A program made the translations under genes and the position numbers. A DNA stretch of 64,000 nt, taken from assembly GCA_043228905.1 (NCBI GenBank), contig JBHGNT010000007.1, positions 1,240,001 to 1,304,000 on the forward strand, read 5' to 3'. Shown here in pieces: positions 2,210 to 54,500 of this stretch. Origin of the DNA: Azolla caroliniana (Eukaryota; Plantae; Polypodiophyta). How positions within the stretch are numbered: position 1 is the stretch's first letter; each line of letters opens with the position of its first letter. The notes beneath the pieces were generated by a model. That model worked only from the letters and a program-made list of their open reading frames with translations. It was not told the origin of the DNA and searched no databases.

Positions 2210-2212
<3 letters not shown>

Positions 2213-2270
<58 letters not shown>
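2213..2270. repeat. (CT)n microsatellite
   Basis: About 29 perfect CT units. Confidence 0.95.

Positions 2271-2272
<2 letters not shown>

Positions 2273-2558: not shown

Positions 2559-2561
<3 letters not shown>
2271..2561 (+). mobile_element. 5'-truncated LINE 3' fragment (CCHC zinc-finger end plus 3' UTR)
   Basis: Translates to L-C-T-L-C-P-K...E-Y-H-I-L-I-Q-C-S-A-S-N-Y-I-R, a C-terminal CxxC..H..C motif. 2336-2540 is clearly homologous to 25322-25520, the 3' end of the LINE split by the gypsy element. Confidence 0.65.

Positions 2562-2601
<40 letters not shown>
2562..2601. repeat. (CT)n microsatellite
   Basis: About 20 CT units. Confidence 0.95.
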
Positions 2602-2604
<3 letters not shown>

Positions 2605-3440
2605 TTCACCATGAGCTCAACATTGTCCCATAGATTGCATTCATTCTCGAATGGTGGTTAATTTCTTTTTGTTATTGGCTTCGTGGTTTGCTCGAGACAA
2701 TGAATGTTATAAAATGAAGCGAACTGAAGCTCAATACTCAATACGGGCTTCATTCCATGGCATAGATTGTATCGGTGTGCCATGGGCATCGAGACGATAA
2801 GTCTCTCCATCCCTCCCAAGGCTTTTAAAACACAAAATAGAAGCAAATTAGAAGAGCTACACAAACCACATAAAAGTGTCTATAACAAGCTGTAACAGAA
2901 CATAACAAGCTGTAAGAGATAAAGGCTCAGCAATCAATTGTTCTGCCTTTCCCCCCCTATCTTGTTTACTGATAACAGAGCAGATTCTACTATCTAGTTC
3001 TCTGTGTTTTATTTCTTAACTGAGAACAGAGCAAATTCTAGCAATCAATGACTCAAACTATTACTATACATCTAGTTTGTCTCTGTGCCTCACTCCCTCT
3101 ACCAATTTTTTACAAAAAATCAGAGAAACTCTAAAAATTAGAGACATAGATCGAAGTGGGTATTTACTATTTTCGTGTTCTATCTGTTTTCTCTACTCAT
3201 TATTGAAAACAGAGAAAATTCTAACTGATAGAGTCTCAGATCAAGGTGGGCATCTTCTAATTCTATCTATTTTCCCTATTATGCTCTTTACTACAGGCAT
3301 ATTGATTTCTGATCAAAGAACAACACTCTTTGCAATTCAAGTTGTGCGGCACAGAAAGGATATAGGTATGGCTTATATGTAAATCTATACTTGAAGTGAG
3401 ATTAACGTTTTTGGGGCTCAAAATATATATGCAAGAAAAC

Positions 3441-4012
3441 ATGGGGGATCCATTGGCAATTCAAAGAAATGGGTCCTCTAGCCTTTCAGAAGAGAGTATA
3501 CGACTCCGCGCAGAGAGAGCAAGAGTTGAACCGCCTTATGATTCTTTTGTATGCCCTCTGACAAAGACAATTATGAAGGATCCTGTCTCTTTGGAGAATG
3601 GCCAGACCTATGAAAGAAGTGCTATCGAGAGATGGTTTCACGAGTGCAGTAGTAATGGAAGGCCTCCTGTTTGCCCGTTAACGGGGAAAGAACTTGAATC
3701 TACAACATTGAAGCCGAGCTTAGCTATTCGGCAAACCATAGAAGAGTGGACTACTAGGAATGAGGCGGCACAACTTGATAATGCGAGATCACTTCTTGTT
3801 TCAGATTCGAACGAGGAGATAATACTTGCTTTGAAAGATCTTCAGAGTTTGTGTTTAAGGAGTACCTTAAACAAACATAAAGCTAGAGGATCTGGCCTTA
3901 TACCTCTCATTGTTGGTTGTTTGAAGAATGATGAGGCTGTTCGGTGCTTGGCGCTTGCAACATTGCGTATTCTTGCCGAAGATGTCGATAGCAACAAGGT
4001 AGATACTCACTC

Positions 4013-4060
<48 letters not shown>

Positions 4061-7000
4061 GAGAGAGAGGATGGATGTAAATCAGTTGGTAGGGTTCTCA
4101 TGCAGAGACAAGAACCCCTACATTCCACACAGTTTAATAAATCAATGAAAATTCTAATTGCATGGATAAAAATATGGTTTAACTCTGTGGTACTCCAGAT
4201 ACGATAAAATAAAATGAGAAGGGGGGGAAGAGAATTAGGGGAGATGGTTCATTGGTTTTCTGTGCATGAAATAAATAGATCTCTTCTCAGCGCATATATG
4301 CACAAGAGAGTATATCCATGCTTTCTCGGCACTTCCATTTAGTCTTCAATGTTCTTTGGAAATTTGGGGTTTGTGGCATAATTGAGAACTCCCAGTACAT
4401 CCCATTATTTTATGGTCGGCATGGTATTGCTACTCCTATTCACCAGTTGAAAGACATATGTTTGTTTCCGTTCCTCTGGGCTATTGGCACATACATGCCT
4501 GTTGGTTATTTGGTGGTGCACCACATTTTATACATAAGATATCTGTGGGATATCGTATATGTTGTTAATGAACTTGTGGTTTGTATCTCCATACTTTACA
4601 AAAACATGACACATTTGCAAGTGATAGAGGGATAGATCAATTTTATTATTGTCCTCAGAGGTCAGAAATGACTAATGGAACGAAAGTGACATTTTCACTT
4701 GGTGTGTATTGGAAAGTGACACTCAATTTTCAGGCTAATGAACATTGCAATTGATAGTGCATTGTGGCAACAGAGAATGTTTGCATGGATAGCTCAGATA
4801 CAGAATGAGAGAGATTAGCATCCTGGTGATGCCAAATGTGACCCATGAGAGAGAGTCAGTGGCTGTGTAGTACTTAGTAAAGTTGTGCGTTGGCGACAGG
4901 AAAGTTTCACTTTGTCGTTTCGTAAAATGTAATTATTTGGAAGAGTGAAACCAATTGTACATGTTAATGATAAATGTCTTGTGACTAAGAGAGATATTGG
5001 GGGGGGGGGGGGGGGGGGGGGGGGAAGAGAGAGAGAGAGGAGTGTGTGTGTATGTGTACATTTTATGAAAAAGAGAGTTCTTTTTAGGATGCTATTGGGG
5101 AAACAGATGCGCTTCGAAATTGTGTCAAATGCTTATCCCGTGATATTTCAAAGGAGAGAGAAGAAGCCGTGTCTCTGTTATACGAGCTTTCAAAGTCAAG
5201 ATCATTGTGTGAGAAGATTGTTTCATTGAATGGAGCAATTTTGATGCTTGTGAAAACTGTCAGTAGCTCTTCAGATAATGTCCTTACAGTTCAAAGAGCA
5301 GATGAGACACTAGACAATTTAGAGAAGTGCGATGGAAGTGTGAGACCCATGGCAGAAAATGGGAGATTGCAACCGCTCCTTCAACGTTTAGTGGAAGGTA
5401 TTTCTTTAATATATTGAAGTATGCATTCATGGGGGATTTAATGTATGTTCATGTCATTGAATGTGTATGACTGATGAGTGTTCTTATATTCAATAGCATG
5501 AAAGTTTGTCATGTTATATTGGCTAGTTACACTTGATTAACATCTACTAGACATTGATCTGGCATGAAATCAAGTCTAATCACAAATAGACCAGGAATAC
5601 AACAAATGATTTATAAGTGTGTAGAAAAGCTTGATTATAATTGTGTATTATACAAAGAACAATTTAGAAGGTTTACATATATAGATAGATCTTAACAAAT
5701 GTTAAAATCTAAAGTGGATGAATACTAGTTCATGTTCCTGGCTTCTAAGCAGTTGTCAGTGCTTCTTAAGGTATTATGCTATTAATCTGAGAGAGAGAAC
5801 TACTTATTCAATGTGATGTATTTTATATATATAACTAGTTCACTTATCTTCAAAACACCCTGAACTAGCAAGCTTCCTGGAAAGAGTAGCAAGCTTGATG
5901 CTTTATTATTTTAGAACTAGGTAAAATCCTCCAAAATATCCCTTGTTGAACAAATTACAAGAATACCCCTCTGAGAGTCAAAATGTACCACCACAGAGGG
6001 GATAACATACTCTCTAAGAACTTACTTAGGCAAATATGCTTTTTAAATGGGAATACTTAAGTTGTGCTCTTCTTAATAGGTAGTGAAGATGTACGGTTGG
6101 AGATGGCCATGGTCCTGTCGGAACTTGTTCTTAGCTCGGAAGGCAATACAAAAGTTGCTGAAGTTGGTGGAAAAACCCTTGTAAACATGCTTCAGAATGG
6201 CTCTTCCACTGGGCGAGAAGCAGCATTGAGGTGTTTATGCCAACTTTCTACCCTCGAAAGCAATGGCCATATCTTAGCACAAGCAGGTATTTTGTCTCCT
6301 CTCATACGAGATTTGTATGCGGTTGGGATCAACCAACTTTCCGCAAAATTGAAGGAAATAGCTGCAACAACTTTAGCTAATGTAGTGAACTCTGGTATCG
6401 ACCTCGACAAGCTCCCAATAGATTCCGATGGCAATACGTTACTATCGGAATCTATAATCCATAATCTTCTTCACCTAGTGAGTAACACAGGTCCAGCAAT
6501 AGAAGCAAAACTGCTTCAAGTATTGGTGGGATTGGCATCCTCAAAAGAGGAAGGGGCAGTAAATAAGGTGGTGATGGCGATAAAAAGTGCAGGTGCCACA
6601 ATAACTCTTATTCAATTTCTTGAGGTGCCACAAAAGGATCTACGTGCAAATTCTGTGAAACTATTATATTATCTATCAGCAAATATGGGCCAAGAAATCG
6701 CCGATGGACTTCGCATAACAACAGGCCAACTAGGTACTTTAGTAAAGTTCATAAGTACAAATGGTGTATCAGAAGAGCAAGCTGCTGCCGCAAAGTTATT
6801 AGCAAACCTTCCAAGTCACGATGCTCAGCTCACACGAGCTTTGCTAGAAGAGGGAGCAATTCCCGCCGCAGTAAATAAGCTTGAAGAATTGAAGCAAGGA
6901 GTGGTTAGAATTGGTGCAAGCCGATTTGTCGGTATGTATAAAGAAGGTTTAGTTGGTATCCTCCTCCGGTTTACTGAGATATATGGTAATAGAGATATCG

Positions 7001-7656
7001 TAACATCAGCTCAAGAACACAACCTGACGTCGTTTTTCACAAGCTTGCTTAACATGGGTAACCTTGAGGAAGTGCAGAGGATAAGTGCATTAGCATTGGC
7101 TAATCTTTCGTCTCATACAAAGGATTTATCAGTATTGCCCGAGATTGAAGATAGTAGTAGTAGTCTTTGCTTTTGCTTGTTCAAATCACCACCAAAAAAG
7201 GTAGGATTATGTGTAGTTCATGGTGGACAATGCTCTGCAAAACAAACATTCTGTCTCTATGAAGCAGGTGCGATTGTGCCACTAGTGGGTTGTTTGGACC
7301 ATGGAAATACCAGTCTTGTAGAGGCATCTCTAAAGGCACTTTCTACTCTTCTATTGGAGGTTGAGAATATTGAAGGAGGTATCAAAGTGCTGACCGATGC
7401 TGATGCGATACAACCCATTCTAGATATCATGAAAGAGCACAAGACAGAGCAATTACATCAGTTGGTGGTATTGGTAGTTGAGTGTATGCTCCGGGATGAA
7501 GGCATTGCTCGAATAATCTCGGGCAATCCTAGCGTCCACACCGTGTTAGTAGAAGCATTCAAACATGGCAACCCTCTTACGAAGCAAGCTGCTGAGAAGG
7601 CATTGAAGCATTTGAATAAAATTCCAAATTTTTCAGGTGTATTCAAGCTTAAGTAG
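3441..7656 (+). CDS. PUB43/44: U-box/ARM-repeat E3 ubiquitin ligase, PUB43/PUB44 (SAUL1)-like. Exons 3441-3998, 5088-5397, 6080-7656 (alternative in-frame ATG at 3429)
   Basis: U-box EPPYDSFVCPLTKTIMKDPVSLENGQTYERSAIERWF...CPLTG...LKPSLAIRQTIEEW, followed by ARM repeats. SAUL1-type C-terminus (GLCVVHGGQCS..TFCL; AEKALKHLNKIPNFSGVF). GT-AG junctions keep the frame (NK|DAIGE; VEG|SEDV). Confidence 0.92.
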
Positions 7657-10091
7657 AGTGCTTTTGTTCCCTATCCTTTGTAACCTTTTCAATAAATTGT
7701 GGTAACTTTAGGATTTGATTATTTTGAACATATCACTCTCACACATTTTTATGTAACAAAGATAATCCAGAAAACCATGCATGAGTGGTAACCAAGCACA
7801 GAATGACACCGAGTTAACTATCCATTTTCCTTAGAAAGGAAAGATTCATGTGCAGCAAGTTTCTGATATGATTGAATATCAGGGGCAACAAATTTTTTAA
7901 CATGATGGAAAGTAAATCATAAAATGCTTAAGATTATTCAATCCACTTGTATGGACACTTACCAAACATAAGTCTTGCAAAATGCCTATGGATTATATAC
8001 TTCCAAGGCACACATGGTTTCCCCTCAATGGTCTTGCATATGTTCAATTGACATTGTTTCTTGTTACAAGCCAACTGATGAACATTTTTGAACCTGCAAC
8101 ATTTGCTTAGCACAAGCTGGTTCAACATTGTAGATTTTTGCAATACTTGAATTAGAGATCAGAAAATAAGCTTTAGATAGAGTAGATGAATTCGAATTCT
8201 ACGAGCATTATTCCTATGGATTTATACAATAATATTTCTTAGGGTAATCCTCTGAACGGACATATTATGAAATAATACAAATTCATTTTTGTTAAGTAAC
8301 CGTGATCTTTAGTATGTCAAGGTTTGTTGATGATGATGTCTTTGTTCCATTCTTTTTTTGGTGTTTCATATCTGTTTCTAGAATTGTTGTATGCCAATGA
8401 AAATCTATCCTCTTCCTAAACCTCCAATGCTTTATCTTCATCAAATTAAGATAAAAATCACTCATTCAAGCTTGCAAATTCAACCTTGGGGTGTTTCCTC
8501 CTTGCATCACCATTGACGTGCTCCTACATTTTTGCCGAAAACGTATGCGAGCAGTGACCACGTTGTTGGAGTAGTCACAAACCTTGTCCTTGCATCACCA
8601 AGATAAGTAATTTATTTCTTGAAGAACTTGCATTTTGAGATCTTCGTGTAGAATTGCTTGTCGCGCAATGTTTGTAAAACAAAGCGGACATGTTTACCAT
8701 GTTCTTCTAATGTACGACTATAGACTAGAATATCATCCGAGAAAATAACGACAAAATTTTCAAGTTGTTCTCGGAAAATGTCATTTAGTTCTTGTTGAAA
8801 TGTGGCTAGAGCATTGGTCAAACCAGAAGGCATGAACAAAAACTCATAATGGCCATAGCGCGTGCGAAATGCCATTTTAGGAACATCTTCCTCACTTATA
8901 CGAATTTGATGGTAGCTTGTACGAAGATCAAGTTTCGTAAAATATCGAGCTCCCTAGAGACAATCAATCAAATCGTTAGCCCGGGGCAATGGATATGAAT
9001 TCTTGATCGTCACTGTATTCAAGTGTCGGTAATTAATACACAAACGCCATGTGCCCTCTTTCTTTTTTACCAAGAGAACAAGTGTTGCCCATGGGGATTT
9101 ACTATAACGTATATAAACCATTCGTAAATAGTCCTTGAGTTGCTTAGATACCTCATCCTCTTCAGATCAACTTAAGCGATATAGAGGTATACTTATTAGT
9201 GCTACGCCAAGTACAATATCTATACGATGGTCTATATTACGTTTAGGAGGTAACCCATGTGGTAGTTCACTCGGAAAAACATCACAAAAATCATTTAAGA
9301 TTTCATCGAGTTGTTGTTCAAAATATGATAAATGGCTCGAAACACTATCGATATTATAAACGTGAATGTTCAAATCAGGTACACAATAAAATAAAGAAGA
9401 ACAAGAAAACTCGGATATTGATGGAGAGGAAACAATCGAAAGAGATTGTTTTTTTACCCATTGAATAAAATGAGTACAATCATTTAGTACAAAGGTAATG
9501 GAATGGTGAACCCAATTAATAGATAAAGAACAGTTTTTATTATAAAACCAGGGATAACCTAGTATTACATCAGTGGTACAAAGATTCATTACATTGAAGT
9601 CTACTTCCTCTATATAAGTATCAATAGAAATTCCTAATGAATGAATCACCCCGTTGATGTATTGTACTCTTCCATCAGCCAAGTGCACCTTATAGGTGTG
9701 ATCACTTATGGTGAGTTGGATTCCCCATATCCGAACCAAACAATCATTCACAAAGTTGTGTGAGCTTCCCGAATCAAATAAAAATTGTACTGGAGATCCA
9801 TTGATATACCCATTTGCACGTAGTAAATCATTGGGTGCCAATACATAGTGAGGGAAAGAACATTTACAATTACTTAAATGATGTGCATAGACCTCAAGGA
9901 CATCATGAATTTGACCTTTATGGTCTGCAACTTTGGTTTTGTTGTCGTGCTCTTTTCGTTAGAGCTTTTGACATTACTCTTTTGTATGACCATTCTTTCT
10001 ATAGAACACACAAAAAGGATTTTGTCGCTTACAATCGTGATCCATGAATTCGTTGGGTGTCTTGTGTTTCCCAGTGAATTGCGACTGCTTA

Positions 10092-11843
10092 GTTCAACTC
10101 GGTTTTGAGACCTTTGGCATACATGGACGATTTCACCTCGTTCAAATCGAGGATGAACATTCGACCATCGCTCCGTCCTTTAGCTATGAGTCGGCCATCT
10201 TTCTCGATGAAGCATCCTTCGTTGTTGAAACGAACTTGCATGCCTTGCTCCACAATTTGACTGACCGAGACCAAATTCTTTGTTATTGTGGGCACGTGCA
10301 AGACATTCTTGATGCAAGTTTGCTCACCTTCTTTACCGAATGGCACATTGCCAATGTGCCGAATGGGATGTGTGGTGTCGTCTCCCATCTCTATGAAGCC
10401 GGGTCAATCGGGTGTGCGCAAAACACTAAACCACTCTTCGTGGGATGTCATGTGATGTGAGACACTGGAGTCGACGAACCACACGCCTTCCGAGTTGAGG
10501 TGCTTGTGGAGTCGGAGGCCAACTTAGAGTTCGCTCTATGTCTGTCTCATTACGAATAGTCCACCGTAGTCGTCGTATTTGGAGTTGGTGGCATAGTTTG
10601 TGAGTTGTTGGCTTGTCGAAGCGGACTCACTTCTCTTCTTTCGACACTCTTCTTCGCAGTGGCCGATTTTGCCGCAATAGTTGCAAGTGATAGGCCACGT
10701 TTGCCAACCTTGTTCTGCATGGAAGCTCCCCCCTCTTCCGAAGGTTCCTCAATGGCTTCCGTCTTGTTGTTGAAGGTTTGAGTTCCCTTCGTGTGATGGG
10801 TCGAATCGACCTCTTCTACCACCTTGTCCTCGGCCACCATCCGAATTCGAGAAGAACATTTGTCCTTCCTACGTGTTGCTTTTGATTTAGGCGTGGTTCT
10901 CTTCAACCAATAACATTGATTGACGGTCGAAGAACGAAGGAGGGTTTTCTCTTGCTAATATAACATTCTTAACGAGTCGAATTGTTGTGTGAGGTCGCCC
11001 AAGCATATTTGAACCATCTTGTCTTCGTCGACGTTTACGTTGATGGAGCCAAGCGAGTCGTAAATGCTCTTGATCTTGGCGATGTAGTCCGACACAGACA
11101 TATCTTTTTGCCGAATATTGTTCAACTCTTGTCGAAGTTGAAGCTTTCGGGCAGTCATGTTGGCGGTGAACATCTTCTTCAAGTTCTCCCACCCCTCTTT
11201 AGGTGTCTTGGTGTCTCGAATGTGGCTAAGCATGTGGCCATCGACACATGTTGCCAAGGAATACATTACCCGAATCGCTCCTTGCTCCCACATTGGGTAG
11301 TTGGCGTTTGTGATGTCTGGTTTGTTTTCGAGTGCGTCGGTGATGTAGCTCCAATACCCTTGGCCAACTAGGTATTTGTTCATCTTGTACTCCCAAGATG
11401 AATAATTGCTCCGATCTAGCTTTTCACTAGGGAGCGAGCTACCCATTTGTGTGTTCATGTTGATTGTAGTGTCTTCCTTTTTCGCTTTTCTTCCTTTAGT
11501 CACGTACATGTGCTACGTAGCGGCACTACAATAGTGGATTGCTGGATTTGTCGTCGGCGTCTCGAACACACAATCACAGAGTTTGGTGGGCTTAGTGGAT
11601 TTTCTAAACCACTTGCTCTGATACCATGTTAAGAATTAGGTAATTAACTACGAGTTAATTAGTACCTAATTATGTGATTAAGCTAAGCGAAAGATTAAAT
11701 GATATGTGTGTGTATGTCATAATGTTAACTTCCTCTCTCTCTTCCTCTCATCACATACACACACATATCACTTAATCTTCCGCTTAGCTTAATCACATAA
11801 TTAGGTACTAATTAACCCGTCGTTAATTACCTAATTCTTAACA
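10092..11843 (-). mobile_element. Ty1/copia 5' fragment (element C1) nested in G1 gag
   Basis: Copia gag (EKLDRSNYSSWEYKM...ARKLQLRQELNNIRQ), zinc knuckle, protease and GAG-pre-integrase region (IKNVLHVPTITKNLVSVSQI). PBS TGGTATCAGAGC at 11615-11626. Gypsy gag sequence resumes on both sides. Confidence 0.88.
11627..11843. repeat. 217-bp palindrome in the 5' LTR position of Copia C1 (91-bp arms, ~35-nt loop)
   Basis: TGTTAAGAATTAGGTAATTAAC... / ...GTTAATTACCTAATTCTTAACA. Four mismatches over 91 bp. Abuts the tRNA-Met PBS. Confidence 0.95.
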
Positions 11844-17970: not shown

Positions 17971-18443
17971 TGTTAAGAGTCTATTACTAATTAATAGACC
18001 AAACTAAAGTAAAAGAAGGAAAATAGAATGGATAGAAGAACCCGTTCCACCCGACCACCCCCGAGCTATGATCTAGACATAGCCAACCTACCACCGACAT
18101 CCTATACCACCGGATATTAGGATGACTAATACCTTGGAAGAGATAAACAAGATCGTCGAGACAAAAGCCTAGCCCGCACCACCAGTGTCTAAGACAACAA
18201 CCTTTCGACGTAATATGATTATGAGGGTAGCTAAGCCTCATATTTATACCTTTTCCTAGGCCCCTTGAATCGATGTGCCTTTCTAAAAGGCTCTCCATTC
18301 ATTGGTTGTCCAAATCATGATAGTGCATGCACTTATCATTCCTTCTATCCAATCATTAGTCCCCTTTTTAACATTAGTGAACATACCCTTCACTAATGTA
18401 GATATTGGTGACCTACCCTCACCAACATTATGTGTACATAACA
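17971..18443 (-). repeat. 3' LTR of G2
   Basis: Direct repeat of 24586-25059; adjacent PPT. Confidence 0.95.
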
Positions 18444-24340: not shown

Positions 24341-24585
24341 TAGATTAACATCGTATGATGGTAGAAAGAAAAAAGAAAAGAAACGAAAACGTAATACCAC
24401 TTCCATATGACCAAGAAGAAAGCATCATAGAAAAGAAAAGAGAGATCGAGAAAGAAGAATATCGGGTTAAGAATGTTGTTTTGATCCTGTGACGAGCACG
24501 ACGAGCCTTGTTAGATCCCCATCGCTCACACGCAAAAAACATCAAAACAACAAAAAAAAATTGTTAGTAAATGCTCTGATACCAC

Positions 24586-25059
24586 TGTTAAGAGTCTATT
24601 ACTAATCAATAGACCAAACTAAAGTAAAAGAAGGAAAATAGAATGGATAGAAGAACTCGTTCCACCCGACCACCCCCCCAGCTATGATCTAGACATAGCC
24701 AACCTACCACCAACGTCCCATACCACCGGATATTAGGATGACTAATACCTTGGAAGAGATAAACAAGATCGTCGAGACAAAAGCCTAACCCGCACCACCG
24801 GTGTCCAAGACAACAGCCTTCCGACGTAATGTGATTATGAGGGTAGCTAAGCCTCATATTTATACCTTTTCCTAGGCCCCTTGAATAGATGTGCCTTTCT
24901 AAAAGGCTCTCCATTCATTGGTTGTCCAAATCATGATAGTGCATGCACTTATCATTCCTTCTATCCAATCATTAGTCCCCTTTTTAACATTAGTGAACAT
25001 ACCCTTCACTAATGTAAATATTGGTGCCCTACCCTCACCAACGTTATGTGTACATAACA
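24586..25059 (-). repeat. 5' LTR of G2
   Basis: Direct repeat of 17971-18443; adjacent PBS. Confidence 0.95.
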
Positions 25060-27199
25060 CCAATGTATCATGACATGGGGAAAATGTGGAGCTGGCTCAT
25101 GCTTCACATATTATACAATAGATGTTGCACCAAATACAAAACCATGTTATTTCCCGAACAAGGAAACTGATTGCATCAGTACATGTTAGAGCCCATCCAA
25201 ACCATTGTTTCCATGTGACTTAATTCACACTCACTACAATGTCAAACGTGGCATTGGAACACAACTAATTAAAGTAATTAACATGCACTAACCAAGTTTA
25301 GGTGTGTGAGAATCACAGTTCGATACAATGTTTTGCCTTTGATCACTGTCTATACTTTCCACACATCTTCGACTAAACCCAATCACTGCACAAATTTCTC
25401 TCGCGGTCACGTTATGCACTCTCAATTGTGACAATCATTGGTGAGTTCTTGAACATTTAGAGTCGCTATTCACTTTCACATGCACTAAAGGAAATGTTAT
25501 ATTTTTTGTCTCATTGGGCATATTTGATCGTTGAAGCTCAATGTGTATAGACAATGAAACATACGCAATTTTCAATAATATTTATCCAATCATATGGTCA
25601 TGTTTACAAAATCTATTTTCTACAAATTACAAAATTATTTATGGACCCTGTATTGAGAATAAACCATGTATGTTTGATGGGGGGCTGAACATCAATCAGA
25701 TAAGCGTGGCACATAATGACTCATTATAAGACAACTCTAAGAAGGTTATCATCAAAGTCACTCTTATTAAAATTTTCTATTTGAGAAAATATGGGGTAAA
25801 AAAACACATACATAGTGATCATGATGTAAGAACAGTTGTTAAAACTATACTATAAAAGAACAACAACAATAAAATTGGTAGATAGCATACCTACTCCTAC
25901 CATCTTTGTAGATTGTAATTACGAGGGAAATAGTTAGTAGATTGTAATATAGGGATTCAGGAAGTAGCTAGAAAGGAGGTAATGATGAATGGGAACATTA
26001 TATATGTGGATAGATATATTAGATTTTAGTATCGTGTATGTGTGAATATATTAAAAACGGATATAATAGAGATCTTCCTCTAATACTTAACATTGTTCCT
26101 TTTCCTTTTTGTAGAGGGTATAGTTTGATGCATCTAAAACTTAACAAGTTCCTCTCCTACTGAGAGAACAAATGGTGGGTTTCTTTTAAATGCAATCATA
26201 TTATCAAATTATGATCCACTCGGTGTATTGATTGCTCTTGTCACCTTCACTTCATATCTCTCTCACATTTGAATTATCCATCTTGTTCACTATGAGCATT
26301 GATAGTTTGGATTCGCTATTAATTCTCTTTTGTGGTAACTATTGCCTTCTATTGAGTTTTAGAAGAAATGAGTGTATGATCCTTTGGTCTTGTTCCAATA
26401 TCATGGCAAACCATCTACTCATCGATGTTGTTCAATATCATTATTCATTGCATTTTCCCCTTGTTGGTCCACAAATGAAATCAATGCACAATGTGTAACA
26501 TAGCATGTTACCTTTTTGCTTTATAGACTCTTATACGTGTGCATTGTCTTCCTATAATGTGAACTCATAACCTTCACATCATATGTCTATAATTTGTGTT
26601 ATCTAATTAATATTTCATGCAATGTAGATCAAATAGATTTTGGCATATACGTAATCTTCTTCTTTGTAGCAATCTCCTCATCAACACTATCAACATTGCA
26701 TCATAAAAATACAAATCTGTTTCAACAAAAGAGTTTTCATCAACTTGTGATGTAATTTCTTACAATTACCTATTTAAGCATGTTGGTGCAATATTATATA
26801 CCTTAGAACTTTATGGCTATGATCATAATATTTCATCTTTATATTTTGTGATTGTATACATTTTACACCAGTATTCATTGTCCATGACACATAAATCAAT
26901 TACTTGGGTCTCTAAAGGTACATTGCCTCATAAAAGGTGACTCTAATGAAAGGTGATATGGACATATTGAAGAGGTCAAAAGTGGTTCCCATTTAGGAAG
27001 GGAACGTTGGGAAAGGTATGTAGAGTTAAATTCACATAATTCATTGGTTGTAGGGGTTTTTAGAGGAATGCGTGTTAGGATAGAACTTGTGACTTACCAC
27101 GAGAGTCTCGAGTATTTTCTATGTAACCACTTTGCCTTCAATAGTTGACCCTTTGTTGGTGATCAACTTCAGCTCCTTATGCATTCCATTCAGATTTTT

Positions 27200-40739: not shown

Positions 40740-41950
40740 GAGTGGAAAGGGGGTATTTAGAGGATAAGACCTTCCGTCTTTTTTATGTGGATAACGCAAA
40801 TCAATTATCTCAATTGTCGGAAATAGTAGTCGATTATCCTTATGTTATGAAACGCAAGATAAGGGTAATAGGATATGTTAATCGCAGATGGTATAGTGAC
40901 CCATCAATAGAGGATATAAGGTCATATTGGAAGTTATGGATGATGGGTAAACAACCTTTGTTAAGATTAGCATAGGACCCAACTAATTATCAACTTGTAA
41001 ATGACAACGAGCACAACTAGAGGATATGCCCATCTTATGCAGTCATGTGCCAACAGGCACAACTCGATGCGCAAGTAACCATTGTACATGACTTACTAGT
41101 AACAACTTTAATTTTTTCCAATATTCTGTACAATTGGGAAGACATGTTTTGCTGGATAAATGAGATGTGTTACCAATTGCATTTCAATATTGGAGTCAGC
41201 AAGGTATTACTCCAAAATTTCTTGCTATGTTCTAGGTTAACCTATGGGCAAGAAACAGTCACAACAATATACTAAGTCATGTACAATGGTTACTTGTGCA
41301 TCGAGTGGTGCCTGTTGGCACATGACTACATAAGATGGGCATATCCTCTGGTTGTGCTCGTTGTCATTTACAAGTTGAAACTTAGAAACATTGTCTATAG
41401 AATTGCATTGAGTCTCAACCGGTATGGCAACGCCTCTTTAGAATATTTGCTAACTACTTTCCATCATCGGTATTCACATGGGGCATGGTGGTTTGGGCGT
41501 CGCTTGTCCACTCTATTTTTCATTACGACGTTGAATCTATAGACCATGGTTTTCACACTTGTCACTAACTTTGGAAGTGTTATGTACTTCCATTAGTGTT
41601 AGTGTGTATGCAGTTTTGGGGGATAAGGAAGGAGGTGCAACTATTATGGGAGATATGGAATAGTACGGTAACTACATTTTACATATGGAAGGCTCAATGC
41701 TCTCTCGTTTTTCATCAAGTTATAGCCTCACCAATTGAATTGGTAAAAAGTATTTGGTTGGACATGGTTCATATTTTGAAGGGTCAATGGGATTGTATTA
41801 TTGGAGACCTGACGATAAAGTTGCTCAGCACCATCAGTTTCTTACTTTGTGAAATGCAACTCCACTTATATCCTTGAAGAATGGCACTCCTTTTTGGTAC
41901 TTTCAACAACCAAAATGGTTGTTTCCTCCTTTGATCACATCGGAATCAAA
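40740..41950 (+). mobile_element. Decayed L1-type LINE 3' region (zf-RVT-like)
   Basis: Trp-rich fragments such as LWEIWNSTVTTFYIWKAQCSLVFHQ, typical of plant L1 ORF2 C-termini. Many frameshifts. Confidence 0.55.
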
Positions 41951-45571: not shown

Positions 45572-48500
45572 TTAAACATTTGTTCCATCTATTGGTAAGC
45601 CCAAATATATCCATTGATTGACACCATCTTTGAGATGGACGACATTCTTGAAACCAGCCTCTTGCAATTCATATACCGCCTTCAAGGACCTGTGTACCAA
45701 CAAATTCTCATTTTGAACTACAAATCCATATAGCTATAAAATGCATGTTGACATGTGAAGATAGACTCAAAGAGTGACATTGATGCCAACGATTAAATAA
45801 TGTGATGCCAAACACGGTGAATATTCAAAAGAAAGAGCCATGCATGGCTAGTAATTGTTTAACCTCCACTCTTATTATGCATAGGACATACTTGAATTTT
45901 CATCACAATGTTACAAATTTAGCAACATTTGCTAACCATCCACCTCATGAAAAATATTATTAACCTATAAAAAGATCAATCTATCAAGTCACGAAAATTT
46001 AAGCAACCATCTAAAGTTGTTATCAAGCTTCACAATTCTTGGCTTCCAGATTATCCGAAAATTTCATTGGTCAATATACCTATGGTCAACAAGAACCAGT
46101 ACCATTGTAGAGAGGTCAATATGATGCATGGTCCTAATACTGTTCCAGAATCTTTCCAACTGCTAGTCCGAAAATTACGATACATGGGCCTGAATTTGGA
46201 ACATTTCATTTGAGAAATGTTTGAAGAACCCACGGAAAGAATTGTTTGAGCACTTGATCAGATTTTGCGACATTGCATTGCTAAAATTTCATTTTCTATG
46301 ACATTTTGTTGGGCGTGTCTCATACAGATTTCACACAGAAACTTGAGTTGCACCTTGAAAGTCTCAAGGGGAAATAAAATGCCTTTACTAGTGAGGGTCA
46401 TTCCCAAGTATATTCAGGGTAATTCGGTTACAATTTCTCACTACTAGAATCATTCAAATGCATTCATGTGGCGTTGTAGTCCCTTTTGCAAATCAAGCAT
46501 GAAAATAGTTTCATCAAAACATACAATTACTGCTACTAGAATCCATTCTAAAGGTGACAGATGATGACAATGTATTATTGTTCGATGGATGCCAATAACA
46601 TGACATGGGAAGGGCCATGTGCGGATGTGTGGGAGATCAGATGAGGGAGGGATTGGACAAGAGGATACACAAAGTTTATAAGAGACAATGAGCTAATGTG
46701 CAGATGGACTGATGGGAGGATGCATGAGCAGATGAGCAGACCGGAGGAAGATCGGATCAGGTAAGTAGACATGCTGGAGATTAGATAATGTTATAGATCG
46801 GTGGAGCAGAGAGCCAAGACAGAATAATTGAGAGAAAGAAAAACTGTTTTCATAAAAGGGAAAAACAGAAAAACGATGGCTGCAATTTTCTGCCTCTATA
46901 TTGCAGGAGAGGTTTTTCTCACACCATATATCACCAAGTAAAAAATACGAGCACCGGCCATTTTGGCCTTTTCACACTATGTACATGTCTATGTACATAT
47001 AACAATCTCCCACTTAAAAGCCTAAACTAAGAGTGCGAACAATAGAAGGTTGAACTATACAAGGCCTATACCTCCCACCTGATGGGCATGTTACATAAGG
47101 CACTAGGTGATCCCCATCAAGTGACAACAATGCCCCAATGCATCTTGTGGTAAGGCCTTGGTCAATGCGTTTGCGGCATTAGCTAAGCATTCACAAATGA
47201 AATGGTATCGCACTCCAATGTGCTTGGTCTTTGCATGATATACTGGGTTCTTAGCCAAAGCAATAGCACTCTGACTATAACAAAACAATTTGGGTACATG
47301 TTGAGGTATACCCATCTCACTAGCTAATCGAGACAGCCAAATTGCTTCCTTACATGCCTCACTGGCTGCAACATACTCAGCCTCTGTAGTTGACAATGTG
47401 ATACATTCTTGGAGACGGGATCTCCAAGCATGGCACCTCCCATAATTTGAAAAATGTACCCTAAAGTAGATTTCCTACTATCAGCACATCCAACATAATC
47501 TGAATCTGTGTATCTGATGATAGAGACATCGCCTTTACCCAAACATAGACACTTATCTTTAGTGCCACTCAGATATCTCAAAATCAACTTGAGTGCATCC
47601 CAATGTTTCTTACCAGGATTTGACATGAATCGACTTACCGCGCCCACTGCAAATGCAATGTCTGGTCTAGTAGCCACCATGGTGTACATAAGACTACCAA
47701 TAGCAGTTTGATAAGGAACCTTGGTCATGAATTCCTTGTCCTCATCAGATGTGGGGCAATCACACGTGCTCAGCTTTACATATGTAGGCAATGGAGTGCC
47801 CAACGGCTTTGCATTCTCCATATTAAACCTCTTGAGTACTTTCGATATGTACTCAGCCTGAGACAAGTAAATGCATCGTTTATTCCTATCACGAGTAATA
47901 CGCATACCAAGAATATGTTTTGCGTCTCCCAAATCCTTCATGTCAAAAGTCTGACTCAAGTTTTTCTTCAACAAGAATAACTCCTCGTTTTTACCAACGA
48001 TAAGCATGTGATCAACATAGAGTATCAACATAATAGAACTCGCATCTAAACATTTTTCGTATAAAGACATGGATCCTCATTGCTTCTAGTGCACCCCTAA
48101 GTCTTCATAAAAGCATCAAACTTTTGGTACCTCAATCTTGGGGACTGCTTAAGCCCATACAAGCTCTTCTTGAGTTTACATACTAAGTGTTCTTTGCCTG
48201 AGACTTCATAACCTTCTGGTTGTTCCATATAGATCTCCTCATCAAGATCCCCATGCAAGAAAGCAGTCTTTACATCCATTTGAACTGATTCTAAGTCCTG
48301 ATTCGCAGCCAATGCAAGCAACATACGCAATGTAGTCATCTTAACTACAGGAGAGAAAATTTCATCAAAGTCAACTCCTTGTTCTTGCTTGAAACCTTTT
48401 GCTACCAATCGTGCTTTGTACTTTGGAGAAGTTTTATCAGATGTATATTTATACTTGTAGACCCATTTGCATGGTAATGCTTTCCTATCCTCTGGCAAAG

Positions 48501-51500
48501 GTACTAAATCCCAAGTACTATTCTTATGAATACTATCCAATTCACTTTGCATGGCATGCTCCCACTTAGCATGATCGTTATTCAACATAGCTTCCTTATA
48601 GCAAGGGGGTTCACCTGCATCCATTAACATCACATAATCCGTGAGCCTAGCAGGTGGCCTAGAGACACGAGTAGATTGTCTCACTAGTTGCTGAACCGGT
48701 GTCGGAATGTTTCCTGCTTGTACACATGCATCATCATCTTGAACATCCTCATATGGGTGAAAATATGTAGGATTGTCCGGCATAGGTGTGGGATTATTCT
48801 TTTGCACACTAATAGAGGGTGTAACAACTTGAAACACTACTTTCTTCACTTCCACTTCCTTAATTGGCTGCTTATGCATAGTCTTTTCATTGAAAACGAC
48901 ATCACCACTTCTTTTGATTATAGTGAGCGTTTCAAGGTTCCATAAGCAATATCCAAACTGACCATCTATACCATAGCCAAGAAAAATACATTTTCGGCTT
49001 TTGAAATCTGGTTTCTGCCTTAACTGTTTTGGAACACGAACATATGCTTTACATCCAAACACTCTAAGATGATCATAGTGAGGGGTTTTTCCAGTCCACA
49101 GCTCTTGTGCCACTTCCAATCCTTTGGCAATACTAGGTGATACATTAATCACATGAACATCAGTTCGAACTGCTTCTGCCCAAAAACCTTATGGAAGGTT
49201 TGCATGATGCAACATAGAAACAACTCTGTCCTAGATGGTTCTATTCATCCTTTCTGCTACACCATTTTGTACAGTAGTGTAAGGGGCAATATACTCTCTA
49301 CGAATGCCTCTAGACTCGCAAAAAATCCTGATAGATTAATCACATGAACAGCAGTCCGAACTGCTTCTGCCCAAAAACCTTGTGGAAGGTTTTCATGATG
49401 CAACATAGAAACAACTCTGTCCTGGATGGTTCTATTCATCCTTTCCACTACACCATTTTGTACAGTAGTGTAGGGGGCAATATACTCTCTACAAATGCCT
49501 CTAGACTCGCAAAAAATCCTGAACTCATTAGAGGTATATTCACCTCCATTATCAGAACATAAAGCCTTAAGCTTTATTCCTTTTTCAGTCTCAACCAAGC
49601 CAAGCCATTTTCTAAAAATGGGATATACATCACCCTTCCCCTTTATGGAATACACCCACACTTTTCTTGTGGCGTCATCAATAAATGTAACAAAATACAA
49701 AGCTCCACCCAATGATCTAGTAGGCATAGGGCCACATACATCTGTATGAACTAGATCCAAGGGCTGAGTAGAAGAATCAGAACGAATCTGATGTACAGTT
49801 CTTGTTTGTTTACCATATTGACAATGCTCACAAACTGAAAAATTAGAAAATGATAACATGGGTAAATAGCCAAAACGAGACGGAGTTTCCATTCCCCTAC
49901 GAGACATATGGCCTAAACAACCATGTCAAATACAAGTCATGGGCTGTTCTTTGACAGTCAAAAGATGTTCTTTCTGATGGACAACTAAGGGATAAAGTGA
50001 ACCAACTTTGTTTCCTTTCGCAATAATCATATTTCCTTTTGTAATACGAAAAGATTTGGAATGAAATATCACTTTATATCCAAAGTCATCAAGCTGTCCA
50101 ACAGACATCAAGCTACGAGTTAGCTCAGGCACATGGCATACATTTTGTACAAGAATCTGAGAACCATCAAAAAACTGTAGTATAACATCTCCAATGCCAA
50201 CCACATCACACTAACGTGAATCTCCACGCCAGACTGTACCAAATGGTTTAGCTTCATATCGAGTGAATCACTCTGTATGTGGGGTCACATGAAATGAAGC
50301 CCTAGAGTCCAACAGCCATGTATGAGCAAGCGAGTGAGCCATGTTGACCTCAACATAAGTAGCATCATCATCCACGACCAAAATATCAACATCATCATCA
50401 CATGTAGCATTTATTTCCTCTATTTTCATTGAAGATGATGAATTGGTCACCTGCATAACATGCCCATCACCATGAGTTTTACCCTTTTCCTTTTCTCTTT
50501 CTTTGTTCTTCAAGGCATAACAGTCCTTTTCCATATGACCCTTTTTGTGACAGTAATGACATTCCACAAGTCTCTTTCTGGATTTGCTTCTGCTCTTATC
50601 ATTTCCACGATTGTTTCTGGTTTGGCTTCTACCACATTGTTGGTTCTTGCCATAATCAGAATCTCGTACATTATATGCCTCTCCAACCTGTGAGGTAACC
50701 ATAGATTCCCTAGGAATTTCCTCACTTAGCAAAGCTCCACAAATATCAGTGTACACCAATTTGCCTTTTGGTGCACTACTACTATAGTAGTACAGAAAGT
50801 GTCCCATGAGATAGGCAATGTGCATAACAAAAAAACAGATTTCAGCTCATCATCCATGGTCATCTTTTGAGCTTGCAACTGAGACCATAATGCATCAAAC
50901 TCGTTTTGATGAGAAGCAACACTATCAGTGTCCTTCATGCGAAGGTCATAGAGCTTTCTCATAAAAAACACTTTGTTTGCTGCAGTTTCCTTCTCATATG
51001 TATTGCATAACTTTTTCCAAAGTTCATCGGAATTTTTACTGCCTAAAACAGTGAAATACACACTATCTACCAAGTGCAGTCTTATCGTGATTCGTAGACA
51101 TGGTCAAAGCTTCAAGTTCCTCCCAATCATCATCATCCATGTCATCCGGCTTCTTCACTTTGCCGCCTAGAGGCCTCATTTGCTTTCTTTGAACCAATAC
51201 ATCATGCATCTGATTCTTCCACAAAGCAAAATTAGATCCATCAAATTTGCGGATCTCAATATGATCTTTTCCAAGAAACAAATAGTTCTTACATGAACGA
51301 TTACAACCAACAGAAGTGCTACTAGATGCATCCAACGTTTCTGACTCCATGGGAGTGAACAACAGTATCAAACAACTGAGCACAAGAACTTCTCAACTGA
51401 ATAATAGAAGGAAGCAACTAACCAACTTATTGCCCAAAAAATCTCAAAATGATACCAATGAGTGCATATAACATGCACCACTATCCATACACCTTCCAAA

Positions 51501-54500
51501 TATCAACTACAGTGAGCATACATTTCTAAAATCACAAGCTGTAGGCATCTGCTATGCATCCAAAATTTTCAACTCTTTGCGGAATGTAGTGAGGTCTCCC
51601 ACCACAACTTATTTCTTCTGACAAATATGTTGAACAAGCGTGAGAGTTTAAGCAAGAGGAATACCTATGGATAGCAAGCTGTTTTCTTCCTGTCGAGGGA
51701 AAAATGATGTTCAGATGCCAAGCAGCAGATTGATGCTTCATCCAAGTGGCTCCAATCTCCAACGTTGCTACTACAATTCCCAAGCTCCCTATTGTGATCT
51801 CCCATGCTCTGATACCACTGTTATATATCGGTGGAGCAGAAAGGTGGTAGACCATAATGCATTAGGATCATTGTTGGGGTTGCCAGATAGAAACACAAGC
51901 TAGGAAGACTTAGGATCTACCACCTTTCTGTCTTCATAGCTCTTGTTTCTGTTTGGCAACCCCAACAATGATCCTAATGCATTATGGTCTACCACCTTTC
52001 TGCTCCACTGATCTATAACAGATAAGACAATGAGCAGACAAGCGAATGAGTGGGTGGGAGGATGGACGAGAGGATCGGATGATCAGTGGACATGGTCAAG
52101 AAGCTTAATTAGGAGGATTTGGATATGAGCAAATGGAGGAGCAGAATCTAAAGAACAGAGCCAGAACAGGTGAGGGCATGCCATAGTTATGGACTCTTAA
52201 TTGGGGTCAAGAGTTGGGGTTAATTGAGAGTTTGCCAAACAGTGGCTAAATCTTTGCTCATGAAAATGTGAACAAAATCCCAATATTATGCTTCCTATAA
52301 ATGCACCTTTTCTGTGCATTAGGGTTCTCATTTGCTTGCAGGCTATTCGTTCTCCAAGAATATGGTGTCTCAACTATGTGTTGTCAAGACTTGGTGGCAA
52401 TATGCAGTGTAGACAGTTGGGAGGTGAGAGCATTGAGGGGTATGGTGGAGTCTAGATGGTAGAGTATATGTTGGACATGTTGACTATAAGTTTCTGCTAG
52501 TTCATGGTTTAAGTGGATAATTGTACATTTCAGTGAGGTTGGTGAGGACGTGCATGCTTGGTGAGGGATATGGAGAGATAATTGTAGTTGACACCTTGAG
52601 CAGTGTGGGATAATGAAGCTTTTGATGGTTTAATTGGCTTCCATTGTACTGCGGATAAAATCAATTATGCTCCCACTGTCTCCTAGTCGGATACATAAAA
52701 GGTTGCTAGAATTTGGGCATGAGCTCATCCCGTTGTAGGTAACTAGGTGATGTCAAGACCTTGCAGCCGCAAGGGAAGCCTTGAGGCATTGGAGTCTACA
52801 GTTCATTGTCTGTTAATAAGAAAACCAGTAATCACTTTCTACCTTCTTCAGACTCCCTGTTTCCTTGCAGTCTTTTCTTCTCTGTTGCTAGCAAGAATCA
52901 AATCCATGACCTCTACTTTTAAAGTGACGCCAACTACCATTGAACCATCAAAGAAAGTCACGTGGTACGTGGAGCTCTCAGCTTAAATATGTCCTGCGTC
53001 AGAGACCCGATGTCTCCACCACAACACAAATTAGAAATACCTCAATGTCAGGACCATACACTACATTCTGTTGTTTCATGTAGTAAATTAGTGCAATTAG
53101 TGAGGCAAAGGGTTACCAAAAATATGGCTTACCACTAGAGTTCAGCCCTGATGTAGAGAGAGAGAGAGAGAGAGATTGATGATGGTATATTGATGTCCCA
53201 GATATTATATTGAAAATATAATATCCCCATTGCCCCAAAAGGGCACGAGAGAGATTGACAACTGGCATTGAACCAGACTGTTGGACCAATGCCTGAAGGC
53301 TCCGTTATAAGCATCTTTTTCTTGGATAGTGAGAGCAAAAAACAAGGAGAGTTTTATTATCATTCTCAGAAGTCAAATAAGACCTGTGGAACCAAAATAG
53401 AACATTTTCACTTAGTGTGCACACAGTTGGTTATTGATTCTCAATGTTCAAGAGTTCTGCTAATGAACATTGCAACTGAGAGGGCATATTGTGACTAAGA
53501 GAGAGAAATGTGTGCTGGGATAGGTTAAGGTTGGGGAAATAAATTTTAATTGCGTTCAATAGTGGAGGATTGCGATAGAGTGTGATGTGTGAACTTGTTG
53601 AGGACAAAAGTTATTGTCTACCAAATTGGCAATGAACTTCATCAACAAAACAAAAAAAACTTACCGAGATTGTCGCCCAAACATTCGTTCTGGATCTTTG
53701 AATTTTTTGGCTTTTGGGCCTTTCCTTTCCACATATGTTTGCAGTGTGCCACCAATGGTGCACATGACTATCACTTTCTTTCTTTTGTCGCCTCCAACAG
53801 CTTCAATGGCTTGATCAAGGAAGAATGGATTACGCTCTGCCCAAAAAAGGACCCAAGAAAATGATTTGTACAGTGTCCATACTTTGTTAACAATTGACAA
53901 GGCTATGATGGTAGTGAAATAAATAGAAATTAACCTGTCCCAGCAAAATCAGTCAGCAATGCATAGCCTAACCTCCTGAAAGAAAACATTGTTTCAGCAG
54001 GGCATTGAAAGCATGGCGTTATTGTTAATGAACTTGGACTCTATTAAAGAAATCATTGGAGAATTTATGTTTAAAATATATATGATACATTGGTTTTAAG
54101 TGAAAAATACCAATCATTACTGATGAGCGACAATTATCATGCATAAAAATCTACAGAAGAAGAAAAAAATACTTTTAAGTGCATACTATCGAAATAGAGA
54201 TTAATGTGCATGTGGTTTTCTAAAAACAATCCAAATATCAGATGTAAGTGCTTTTTTTTCCAAATTTTAATTTGCTGATACACACCTCATATTTGCTTTC
54301 ATGTCATTTCCTTGTATTAGCCTAAAAAGTGGTGCATTTTTTGCATTTTCTACATGTACCTGAACATAACAACTCTGTGTTACTAAAGAATGATTCAAAA
54401 GTTGCAAAATTGTACAGGGAAAAATTAGCAAGAAAACCTTCTCAAAGTCTTCAGATTCTCGTGCATCAAGAAGAATGGCCTTTCCCGATTTAGCAAGATT

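Follow-up and report, generated by a model that had tools for sequence, protein, structure and literature searches.

The element designated C2, which occupies part of the analysed 64-kb stretch of DNA (referred to below as the window), is in our estimation probably a one-off, promoter-less insertion of an ordinary Ty1/copia family, the left end of which originated from snap-back minus-strand strong-stop DNA. We read structures of this type as a recurrent replication accident and not as a new element class. The reading is based on the following observations: an intact TSD encloses the whole unit, which finishes on the outer side in an exact inverted copy of the U5 terminus; the 3' LTR has the form usual in the family, and relatives possess ordinary 5' LTRs; the palindromes of two further elements, L006 and C1, consist of inverted and direct copies of the normal R-U5; and the window contains three local inverted repeats exceeding 35 nt, of which two are PBS-adjacent TG..CA palindromes (C2 and C1).

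Organization of element C2

The original prediction described a unit bounded by a perfect GATAA TSD, with a normal PPT, a 216-bp 3' LTR and, between the tRNA-Met PBS and the right TSD, a 202-bp palindrome. All of these components were located (Table 1). The 3' LTR aligns to L001:6269-6485, L003:1856-2086, and L007:471-691, and the PPT motif also precedes the LTR in L001. The PBS motif TGGTATCAGAGC has three matches in the 64-kb window versus 0.22 expected.

Table 1. Features of element C2 and of the palindrome-bearing end of element C1 (window coordinates).
Feature	Position	Strand	Remarks
Left TSD copy	46784-46788	.	5 bp, GATAA; identical to 52021-52025
C2 element	46789-52020	minus	degenerate Ty1/copia; whole unit between GATAA copies
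C2 3' LTR	46789-47004	minus	216 bp; sense TGTTATATGTACATAG ... CTGCTCCACCGATCTATAACA (TGTTATA...TATAACA)
C2 polypurine tract region	47005-47022	minus	sense GGCTTTTAAGTGGGAGAT; directly ahead of 3' LTR
C2 internal region	47023-51805	minus	degenerate, many stops and frameshifts
RNase H-like motif stretch of C2	47106-47474	minus	recognized by eye, without Pfam match
SH3_retrovirus and RVT_2 of C2	47324-49188	minus	
Tandem duplication in C2	49138-49519	minus	191 bp, 95% identity; in integrase/RT linker
gag_pre-integrase and rve of C2	49260-49925	minus	
GAG of C2	from about 51353	minus	
C2 PBS	51806-51817	minus	TGGTATCAGAGC, initiator tRNA-Met type; single base (G) before palindrome
C2 palindrome	51819-52020	minus	202 bp; 92-nt arms, 92% complementary, 20-nt spacer
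Inner (PBS-proximal) arm	51819-51909	minus	final 22-25 nt are the U5 end
Spacer/loop	51910-51929	minus	20 nt
Outer arm	51930-52020	minus	inverted inner arm, terminating in inverted U5 terminus
Right TSD copy	52021-52025	.	GATAA
C1 PBS	11615-11626	minus	
C1 palindrome	11627-11843	minus	TG..CA, 217 bp; arms 94 nt, 95% complementary, spacer 29

Several features assign C2 to Ty1/copia: the integrase precedes an RVT_2-type reverse transcriptase in the pol order, a tRNA PBS lies by the 5' structure and a PPT by the 3' LTR, and the TSD on both flanks is 5 bp long. Two direct LTRs were not found in C2; the 3' LTR and the 5' structure share 22-25 nt only. The family is a member of Ty1/copia, and C2 itself is an aberrant copy. 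It is also an old, heavily damaged element.

The palindrome in place of the 5' LTR

Searching the 64-kb window for the 21-nt end TGTTATAGATCGGTGGAGCAG yields exactly three occurrences (0 expected), one at the end of the 3' LTR and one at each end of the palindrome; the original prediction had claimed these three sites for a 22-nt end. Each palindrome copy departs from the LTR copy at one position, a different one in each case, so that the LTR version is indeed the consensus of the other two. Both termini of C2 are therefore of the U5 type; the element has 22-bp terminal inverted repeats and lacks a 5' LTR, which bears out this part of the original prediction as well. As single-stranded DNA, the palindrome is predicted to fold with -90 kcal/mol (z = -22 versus shuffles). 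The arms contain two mismatches in the outer 66 nt and five in the 26 nt beside the loop; such a loop-side cluster is expected from a pre-existing imperfect stem followed by a freshly copied extension. The spacer directly repeats a 21-nt motif of the arm (51910-51930 versus 51982-52002).

Apart from the terminal ~25 nt, the palindrome bears no relation to the LTR of C2. Compared against shuffles, the arm interior (67 nt) and the loop display no detectable similarity to the element's own 3' LTR or to the LTR of any relative. Neither the window nor the 17 loci fetched for comparison contain a second copy of the arm interior, and it has no match in the genome contig and viral contig collections. 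A 36-aa open frame through it matches none of 1.84 billion representative proteins. Two candidate sources were rejected. A 14-nt exact match to GAG (50882-50895) is at chance level in a 7-kb self-comparison, and derivation of the arms from a tRNA is contradicted by the failure to find a tRNA and by Rfam scores below threshold. The Rfam search, which included miRNA precursors and tRNA, gave no gathering-threshold match (best 46.5 bits versus a gathering score of 80); a sub-threshold match to MIR845_2 had 33.6 bits versus a gathering score of 80.

Since the arm interior resembles neither the element's own LTR nor those of the relatives, plain snap-back of the element's own R-U5 fails for C2 and an extra assumption is required. 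Because this interior is foreign, strong-stop synthesis probably used a chimeric or variant RNA as template, in which only the last ~25 nt of U5 were retained.

Relatives and recurrence of the structure

The set of relatives comprised 17 loci fetched from public contigs, with L010 representing the same locus as L007. A metagenome scan with the leader motif returned contigs already fetched plus L010. A scan with the exact U5 22-mer gave 0 matches, the pattern being too strict (L006 deviates from it at one base). Every readable 5' end among the relatives except that of L006 is an ordinary 5' LTR (L003, L007/L010, L017, and the collapsed LTR of L001), and the same is true of the sister subfamilies in L001, L002, L004, and L005. 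The sequence of L016 stops short of the 5' end. The 5' LTRs of the relatives start like the 3' LTR of C2 and end in the U5/PBS junction. The sister-subfamily element in L001 codes for an intact polyprotein of 1373 aa, the pol order of which matches that of C2.

L006, an ENA contig of the C2 family, contains a 202-nt palindrome directly ahead of the PBS. The segment from 1079 to about 1215 reproduces the final ~137 nt of the normal LTR in reverse complement, and positions 1210-1280 correspond to the last 71 nt of this LTR in direct orientation. C1 belongs to a truncated element with Ty3/gypsy order and an RVT_1-type reverse transcriptase. In the outer part of its palindrome, the final ~135-140 nt of the normal LTR found in L014 and L015 appear in reverse complement, and the turn lies ~35 nt downstream of the TATA-like TATAATATA. 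The inner arms of L006 and C1 are the last ~70-90 nt of the normal LTR in direct orientation. The description "inverted R-U5, then direct U5 end" therefore fits both; in C2, agreement is limited to the terminal ~25 nt, the interior matching none of the sequences searched. For L006, a partial contig, and for the truncated C1, the comparison covered the 5' end, the 3' ends and TSDs falling outside the available sequence. In all three palindromes, the inner arm is directly followed by a PBS copy, with the junctions ...TATAACA-G-TGGTATCAGAGC (C2), ...TATAACA-G-TGGTATCATAGC (L006), and ...CTTAACA-TGGTATCAGAGC (C1). L006 and C1 represent two independent insertions.

Two of the three elements with an initiator tRNA-Met PBS in the 64-kb window carry a palindrome, as does one of ~8 unselected readable 5' ends of the copia family. 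These small and partly biased samples suggest that PBS-adjacent palindromes are not rare in the fern. A conserved TAR-like hairpin in ordinary relatives was considered and rejected: the strong-stop strands of ordinary copia relatives are predicted to fold no more stably than shuffles, and only those of the gypsy-type relatives L014 and L015 stand out.

Alternative explanations

An assembly artefact is unlikely for C2 because both flank-to-element junctions recur, with 0-2 differences, in the contigs of X1 and X2, two samples from different studies (X1 may be the source sample of the window). The short-read contigs of these samples break 29-42 nt inside both ends and none covers the entire palindrome; L006, moreover, lies on a contig with 1.7x coverage. 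Both facts would be compatible with an assembly or library artefact in the form of an inverted chimera. A chimera of this kind, however, would run on into the inverted PBS and leader, whereas the actual palindrome halts at the U5 terminus and is followed by unrelated flank. The structure is also present in three assemblies, and we regard this explanation as extremely improbable. Some alignment joints step back by 72/73 nt and are ambiguous: they may represent tandem copies of the arm unit elsewhere or secondary placements, the outer arm plus loop of C2 itself containing a 21-nt direct repeat. It is also very unlikely that the palindrome is a small element in its own right, of fold-back or MITE-like type and with ends resembling those of an LTR, which inserted in the 5' LTR or replaced it. 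Its 202-bp size and TG..CA ends would suit such an element, and an unrelated MITE-like inverted repeat is present in the window at 40983-41385. No TSD surrounds the palindrome alone, however; on the inner side, it is separated from the PBS by just the one-base spacer usual for the family; and free-standing copies were found neither in the window nor among the 17 fetched loci. The arms of L006 and C1, in turn, are LTR ends of their own families.

Little credence was given to a heritable non-canonical lineage, the members of which would replicate with a hairpin at the 5' end and one LTR at the 3' end. The palindrome could, for example, be regenerated in each cycle if strong-stop DNA made a very short jump inside the 22-25 nt of U5 end that are shared. 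This would account for an arm interior unrelated to the element's own LTR and for three U5 ends that were identical at birth over about 22 nt, where relatives differ; this combination of U5 identity and foreign interior is consistent with a template that already had the foreign sequence attached to its U5 end. An arm read depth of ~2-3.5x single copy in organism A points in the same direction, but is inflated, as each arm contig fits both arms. The arms of C2, L006, and C1 differ, and those of the latter two are plain copies of the normal LTR end, which argues that the three palindromes arose separately. Furthermore, the 5' end of C2 retains no U3 or promoter, and the arm interior lacks a second copy in the window, the 17 loci, and the other collections searched. 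One route suggested in the original prediction combined a very short strong-stop jump with copying of the 5' end by fold-back or from a second tRNA primer; the geometry of L006 and C1 supports the latter component, and the ordinary LTRs of the relatives lend no support to a family-wide or heritable route. The suggestion that the LTR interior was replaced after insertion is disfavoured. Rearrangement by fold-back during host replication or repair (template switch at a short inverted repeat), or conversion from another locus, is improbable, despite the age of C2, its many stops and 191-bp tandem duplication, and the overall similarity of just 92% between its arms. It would need to halt precisely where LTR and flank meet, leaving a perfect inverted U5 terminus against an unharmed TSD, and the geometry of L006 and C1 would demand the same coincidence three times. 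Fold-back repair, in addition, normally duplicates inward and not a terminus outward. The remaining suggestion, an aberrant fold-back cDNA accepted by integrase, is supported by the geometry shared by L006 and C1.

Proposed origin from snap-back strong-stop DNA

Under the favoured snap-back origin, a tRNA-primed minus-strand strong-stop DNA, complementary to U5 and to whatever stood upstream of it in the RNA template, would miss the first jump. It would fold onto its own 3' end, and extension would proceed through U5 and the tRNA 3' end, giving a hairpin DNA that reads inverted-U5...loop...U5-PBS. A full minus strand, made normally from a second primer and RNA within the particle, would offer the PBS complement at its 3' end; the PBS tail of the hairpin could pair there, so that the hairpin would substitute for plus-strand strong-stop DNA at the second strand transfer. 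Following completion of both strands, integrase would join the two ends, each finishing in ...TATAACA, with the 5-bp GATAA duplication as a result. We infer this order of events and the role of the hairpin as a surrogate in plus-strand transfer, as well as the location of the turn at the 5' end of the RNA. Indirect support for this location comes from the C2 LTR and from L014, where TATA-like motifs precede the position equivalent to the turn by about 30-37 nt.

C2, L006, and C1 each point to a strong-stop length of roughly 120-140 nt. The transcript start is predicted ~105-110 nt before the end of the 216-bp LTR of C2, near GAGGCAGAAAAT; for relatives whose LTRs are longer, the predicted distance is about 137 nt, near GAGAAGCAGAAA. 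Counted against the snap-back origin are the foreign arm interior of C2, the incomplete sequences of L006 and C1, the strong-stop strands of ordinary copia relatives, which are not predicted to fold better than shuffles, and the requirement for two priming events per particle.

Implications

If the snap-back origin is correct, these insertions are genomic fossils of a side reaction of reverse transcription, known chiefly from HIV-1 experiments in vitro, and would show that completion and integration of the 'dead-end' hairpin are possible in vivo. Having one LTR and inverted ends, such copies are missed or mislabelled by annotation tools based on LTR pairs, and they are unable to collapse into solo LTRs. 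The palindrome length offers a sequence-only estimate of the R-U5 length of a family and hence of its transcription start. The long hairpin beside the PBS in each copy is a possible source of silencing RNA.

A bolder and rather doubtful proposition is that self-primed strong-stop DNA is often rescued in this fern lineage, with about one in ten new copia and gypsy insertions carrying a U5-R palindrome in place of the 5' LTR. Were this the case, such copies would be promoter-less and not removable by LTR-LTR recombination, and read-through transcripts of the ~90-bp hairpin on the PBS side could yield small RNAs against their own family. The foreign arm interior of C2 would then mean that chimeric read-through RNAs feed the route.

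Comparison with known systems

C2 and its family resemble ordinary Ty1/copia elements in the integrase-before-RT order, the initiator tRNA-Met PBS, the PPT, the 5-bp TSD, the TG..CA LTR, and the presence of two direct LTRs in relatives; the best named protein matches are to 'Pol polyprotein from transposon TNT 1-94'. Unlike such elements, C2 has no 5' LTR, both its termini are of the U5 type, and it possesses 22-bp terminal inverted repeats. The palindrome is a short unit with terminal inverted repeats, as are fold-back elements and MITEs, but it has neither its own TSD nor other copies in the sequences searched, and its ends are retrotransposon U5.

MIR845-type hairpin small-RNA loci are reportedly derived from LTR/PBS regions (Borges et al. 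2018). C2 is similar to these loci in that a long hairpin adjoins an initiator tRNA-Met PBS and that Rfam miRNA-precursor matches occur below threshold. It differs in the position of the PBS, which lies outside the hairpin, and in the absence of an Rfam match at the gathering score.

A close counterpart is self-primed strong-stop DNA. According to the 1997 work as cited in PMC4668388, the 3' end of strong-stop DNA folds back and extends itself into a hairpin of inverted and direct R-U5, which is known as a dead-end by-product in vitro. The palindromes of L006 and C1 have exactly this composition, and that of C2 has the same geometry. No report of integrated self-primed strong-stop copies was found in the literature covered, which did not extend to subscription journals. 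In contrast to the in-vitro product, the one in the fern seems to have acquired a PBS copy on completion, served in strand transfer, and entered the genome with a TSD.

Structure of the C2 element

The body of C2, a Ty1/copia element, is a decayed copia polyprotein with a reading frame broken by numerous stops and frameshifts. GAG, gag_pre-integrase, rve, SH3_retrovirus and RVT_2 were found, and the integrase precedes the reverse transcriptase (RT). The region 47106–47474 is RNase H-like by eye, without a Pfam match. Several of the named protein matches of higher identity were from the fern Adiantum.

The original prediction had described a target-site duplication (TSD), a polypurine tract (PPT) and a 3' LTR for C2, with a palindrome between the tRNA-Met primer-binding site (PBS) and the right TSD. 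All of these are present in the sequence (see table). The U5 end, claimed to occur at the LTR end and at both hairpin ends, was likewise recovered as a 21-nt sequence, TGTTATAGATCGGTGGAGCAG, which occurs three times at C2 and nowhere else within the window. The three copies were probably identical at insertion, since each palindrome copy departs from the LTR copy at a single, different base. Past ~25 nt, sequence comparison revealed no similarity between palindrome and LTR. The palindrome arms are 92 nt long and 92% complementary, with a 20-nt spacer; as single-stranded DNA the palindrome folds at -90 kcal/mol (z = -22 relative to shuffles). The PBS sequence has 3 matches in the window versus 0.22 expected.

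Plant miRNA precursor models of Rfam, including MIR845_2, gave matches below threshold at 51853–51986 within the palindrome. The MIR845_2 family is known for targeting initiator tRNA-Met (iMet) PBS sequences; the match probably reflects only generic hairpin likeness.

Features of the palindrome-bearing elements C2 and C1 (window coordinates)
Feature	Position	Strand	Details
C2, whole element	46789-52020	minus	
C2, TSD	46784-46788 and 52021-52025		GATAA on both sides
C2, 3' LTR	46789-47004	minus	216 bp; sense start TGTTATATGTACATAG, end CTGCTCCACCGATCTATAACA
C2, PPT	47005-47022	minus	sense GGCTTTTAAGTGGGAGAT; directly 5' of LTR
C2, tandem duplication	49138-49519		191 bp, 95% identity; within integrase/RT linker
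C2, PBS	51806-51817	minus	TGGTATCAGAGC
C2, palindrome	51819-52020		202 bp; single base (G) between palindrome and PBS
C1, body	about 8500-11614	minus	
C1, PBS	11615-11626	minus	
C1, palindrome	11627-11843	minus	217 nt, TG..CA; arms 94 nt, 95%; spacer 29

Representation of C2 in independent assemblies

Logan contigs from four runs were aligned to 46500–52300. Contigs of 1.2–3.1 kb from X1 and X2, which sample the same organism in separate studies (X1 may be the source sample of the window assembly), extend from unique flank through 29 nt of the LTR end, up to 46817, and on the other side from 42–55 nt within the outer arm (51979, 51966) to the right flank. Junction contigs of the two samples show 0–2 differences. 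Summed contig depth amounts to tens to hundreds of times single copy across the highly repeated internal region; outer LTR and arms are low-copy. Because the ends of C2 are repeated, short-read contigs halt inside its termini and none crosses the whole palindrome. Some contig joints 'go back 72/73'; these might reflect an arm unit repeated in tandem at other loci but are equally explained by the 21-nt direct repeat of the C2 locus itself, and were therefore left out of the argument.

The reading of the palindrome as an assembly artefact, namely an inverted chimera, does not fit its outer boundary. Such a chimera would run on as inverted PBS and leader; C2 instead ends at the U5 terminus beside the TSD. 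The independent assemblies, too, contradict an artefact.

Relatives of C2

Relatives were found in ENA metagenome assemblies with the N-terminal GAG piece of C2 (80–91% amino-acid identity), and their contigs were fetched. An ordinary 5' LTR of ~220–245 nt is present in L003 (1856–2086), L007 (471–691; one locus with L010) and L017. These LTRs start as the 3' LTR of C2 (TGTTATATGTACATAGTGTGA...) and finish at the U5/PBS junction. A collapsed PPT-LTR-PBS path with an LTR of the C2 type occurs in L001 (6269–6485), and sister subfamilies in L001, L002, L004 and L005 have ordinary LTRs too. Since the ordinary 5' LTRs of relatives match the 3' LTR of C2, alignment identifies the latter as the LTR of the family and the 5' palindrome as the anomaly.

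The sister subfamily encoded in L001 may be active, because its 1373-aa copia polyprotein (790–4911; ~86% nucleotide identity to C2) is intact. The junction at L001:6170/6171 fuses early GAG straight to 3' UTR/PPT/LTR; it represents either a copy with an internal deletion or a route taken by the assembly through repeats. The 5' flank in L004 (2000–2120) is a short tandem duplication (~80 nt, GCGCCGAGAGCAGGTGGTATCTCCCC...) beside an LRR-type gene.

Further palindromic 5' ends

L006, a contig of 2061 nt from a different ENA sample with a leader nearly identical to that of L003, contains a 202-nt palindrome (1079–1280; arms 71 nt, 94%; spacer 60) immediately 5' of the PBS. The reverse complement of its outer part aligns with ~137 nt of the normal LTR, beginning at GAGAAGCAGAAATATTGCAGCC and reaching the U5 end, and the inner arm is the final ~71–80 nt of that LTR in direct orientation. 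The turn contains TTTCTGCTTCTCC, which can pair imperfectly with GGAGAGGAGAAA further upstream; this short pairing could have primed fold-back.

C1 is of the Ty3/gypsy order, as its domain arrangement indicates, because an RVT_1-type RT directly follows the protease; this arrangement rules out the earlier label Copia. The element is truncated near 8500, beside a host U-box/ARM-repeat gene (3396–7656, plus strand). Ordinary LTRs are present in its relatives L013–L015, where no local inverted repeat was found. The outer arm plus spacer of C1 is the reverse complement of the final ~135–140 nt of their LTR type and the inner arm is its final ~91 nt; the turn lies ~35 nt downstream of TATAATATA in L014.

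Two of the three local inverted repeats >35 nt revealed by a window-wide scan are the PBS-adjacent palindromes of C2 and C1. A 403-bp unit at 40983–41385 (terminal inverted repeats of 116 nt with 94% complementarity, arms 171 nt apart) is MITE-like in appearance, without PBS or TG..CA ends. The third iMet-PBS element of the window (PBS 24573–24584) has a normal LTR pair (17971–18443 and 24585–25060; about 475 bp, 96.4% identity). It may be non-autonomous or belong to another superfamily, because copia INT/RT queries gave no match within it at 1e-5.

The 5' ends in the C2-like subfamily comprise four ordinary and two palindromic ones, one of the latter being C2, chosen on account of its structure; the C1 family yielded three ordinary ends plus C1. 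Palindromic 5' ends appear not to be rare, and this small sample permits no firmer frequency. The possibility that all relatives have ordinary LTRs and C2 is a one-off agrees with most relatives but not with L006, in which the same architecture arose again, as it did in C1 of another family.

Origin of the palindromes

A replicating lineage of hairpin-ended elements is unlikely: the palindromes of C2, L006 and C1 are all different, two of the three simply copy ordinary LTR ends, and the promoter region is gone. Fold-back repair of a normal 5' LTR after insertion would have to stop precisely where LTR meets flank, three times over. A MITE-like insertion as the source of the palindrome would be one with neither a TSD of its own nor other copies in the window and the fetched loci.

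We infer instead a route via self-primed strong-stop DNA. Extension of the fold-back hairpin would have to reach the DNA 5' end and carry on into the tRNA primer. A full minus strand, synthesized from the particle's other primer and RNA, would carry the PBS complement at its 3' end; the hairpin, ending in plus-sense PBS, could therefore anneal to it. Completion of both strands would give palindrome-PBS-body-PPT-LTR, with both termini ending in U5 ...TATAACA and usable by integrase, the TSD being made at integration. The implied strong-stop lengths are similar in C2, L006 and C1 (~120–140 nt), and the spacing between the turn and TATA-like motifs is suitable; both fit this mechanism. Arm mismatches in C2 cluster beside the loop (5 in 26 nt versus 2 in the outer 66 nt), which fits an old imperfect stem with an extension that was perfect when newly copied.

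Neither the 67-nt arm interior nor the loop of C2 is related to the element's own LTR or to any of the LTRs fetched, and no other copy of them was found in the window, the fetched loci or the protein and contig collections searched. Relatives differ at several positions of the terminal ~22 nt; because the three ends of C2 were nevertheless identical at birth, the junction of the last ~25 nt of U5 with foreign sequence was presumably already present in the strong-stop template. This template was possibly a read-through transcript from a parent copy truncated at its 5' end, a product of RT template switching, or an LTR variant outside the sampled set. Strong-stop DNA without R homology would be unable to make the first jump, and fold-back would therefore, we speculate, be favoured.

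A search of full-text literature yielded in-vitro self-priming work and no report of integrated elements with a U5-R palindrome replacing the 5' LTR; this is not proof of novelty, because most subscription journals lie outside its coverage. For HIV-1, self-priming in vitro is established (PMC4668388, citing Guo et al. 1997). The proposed hairpin resembles plus-strand strong-stop DNA in that both end in plus-sense PBS.
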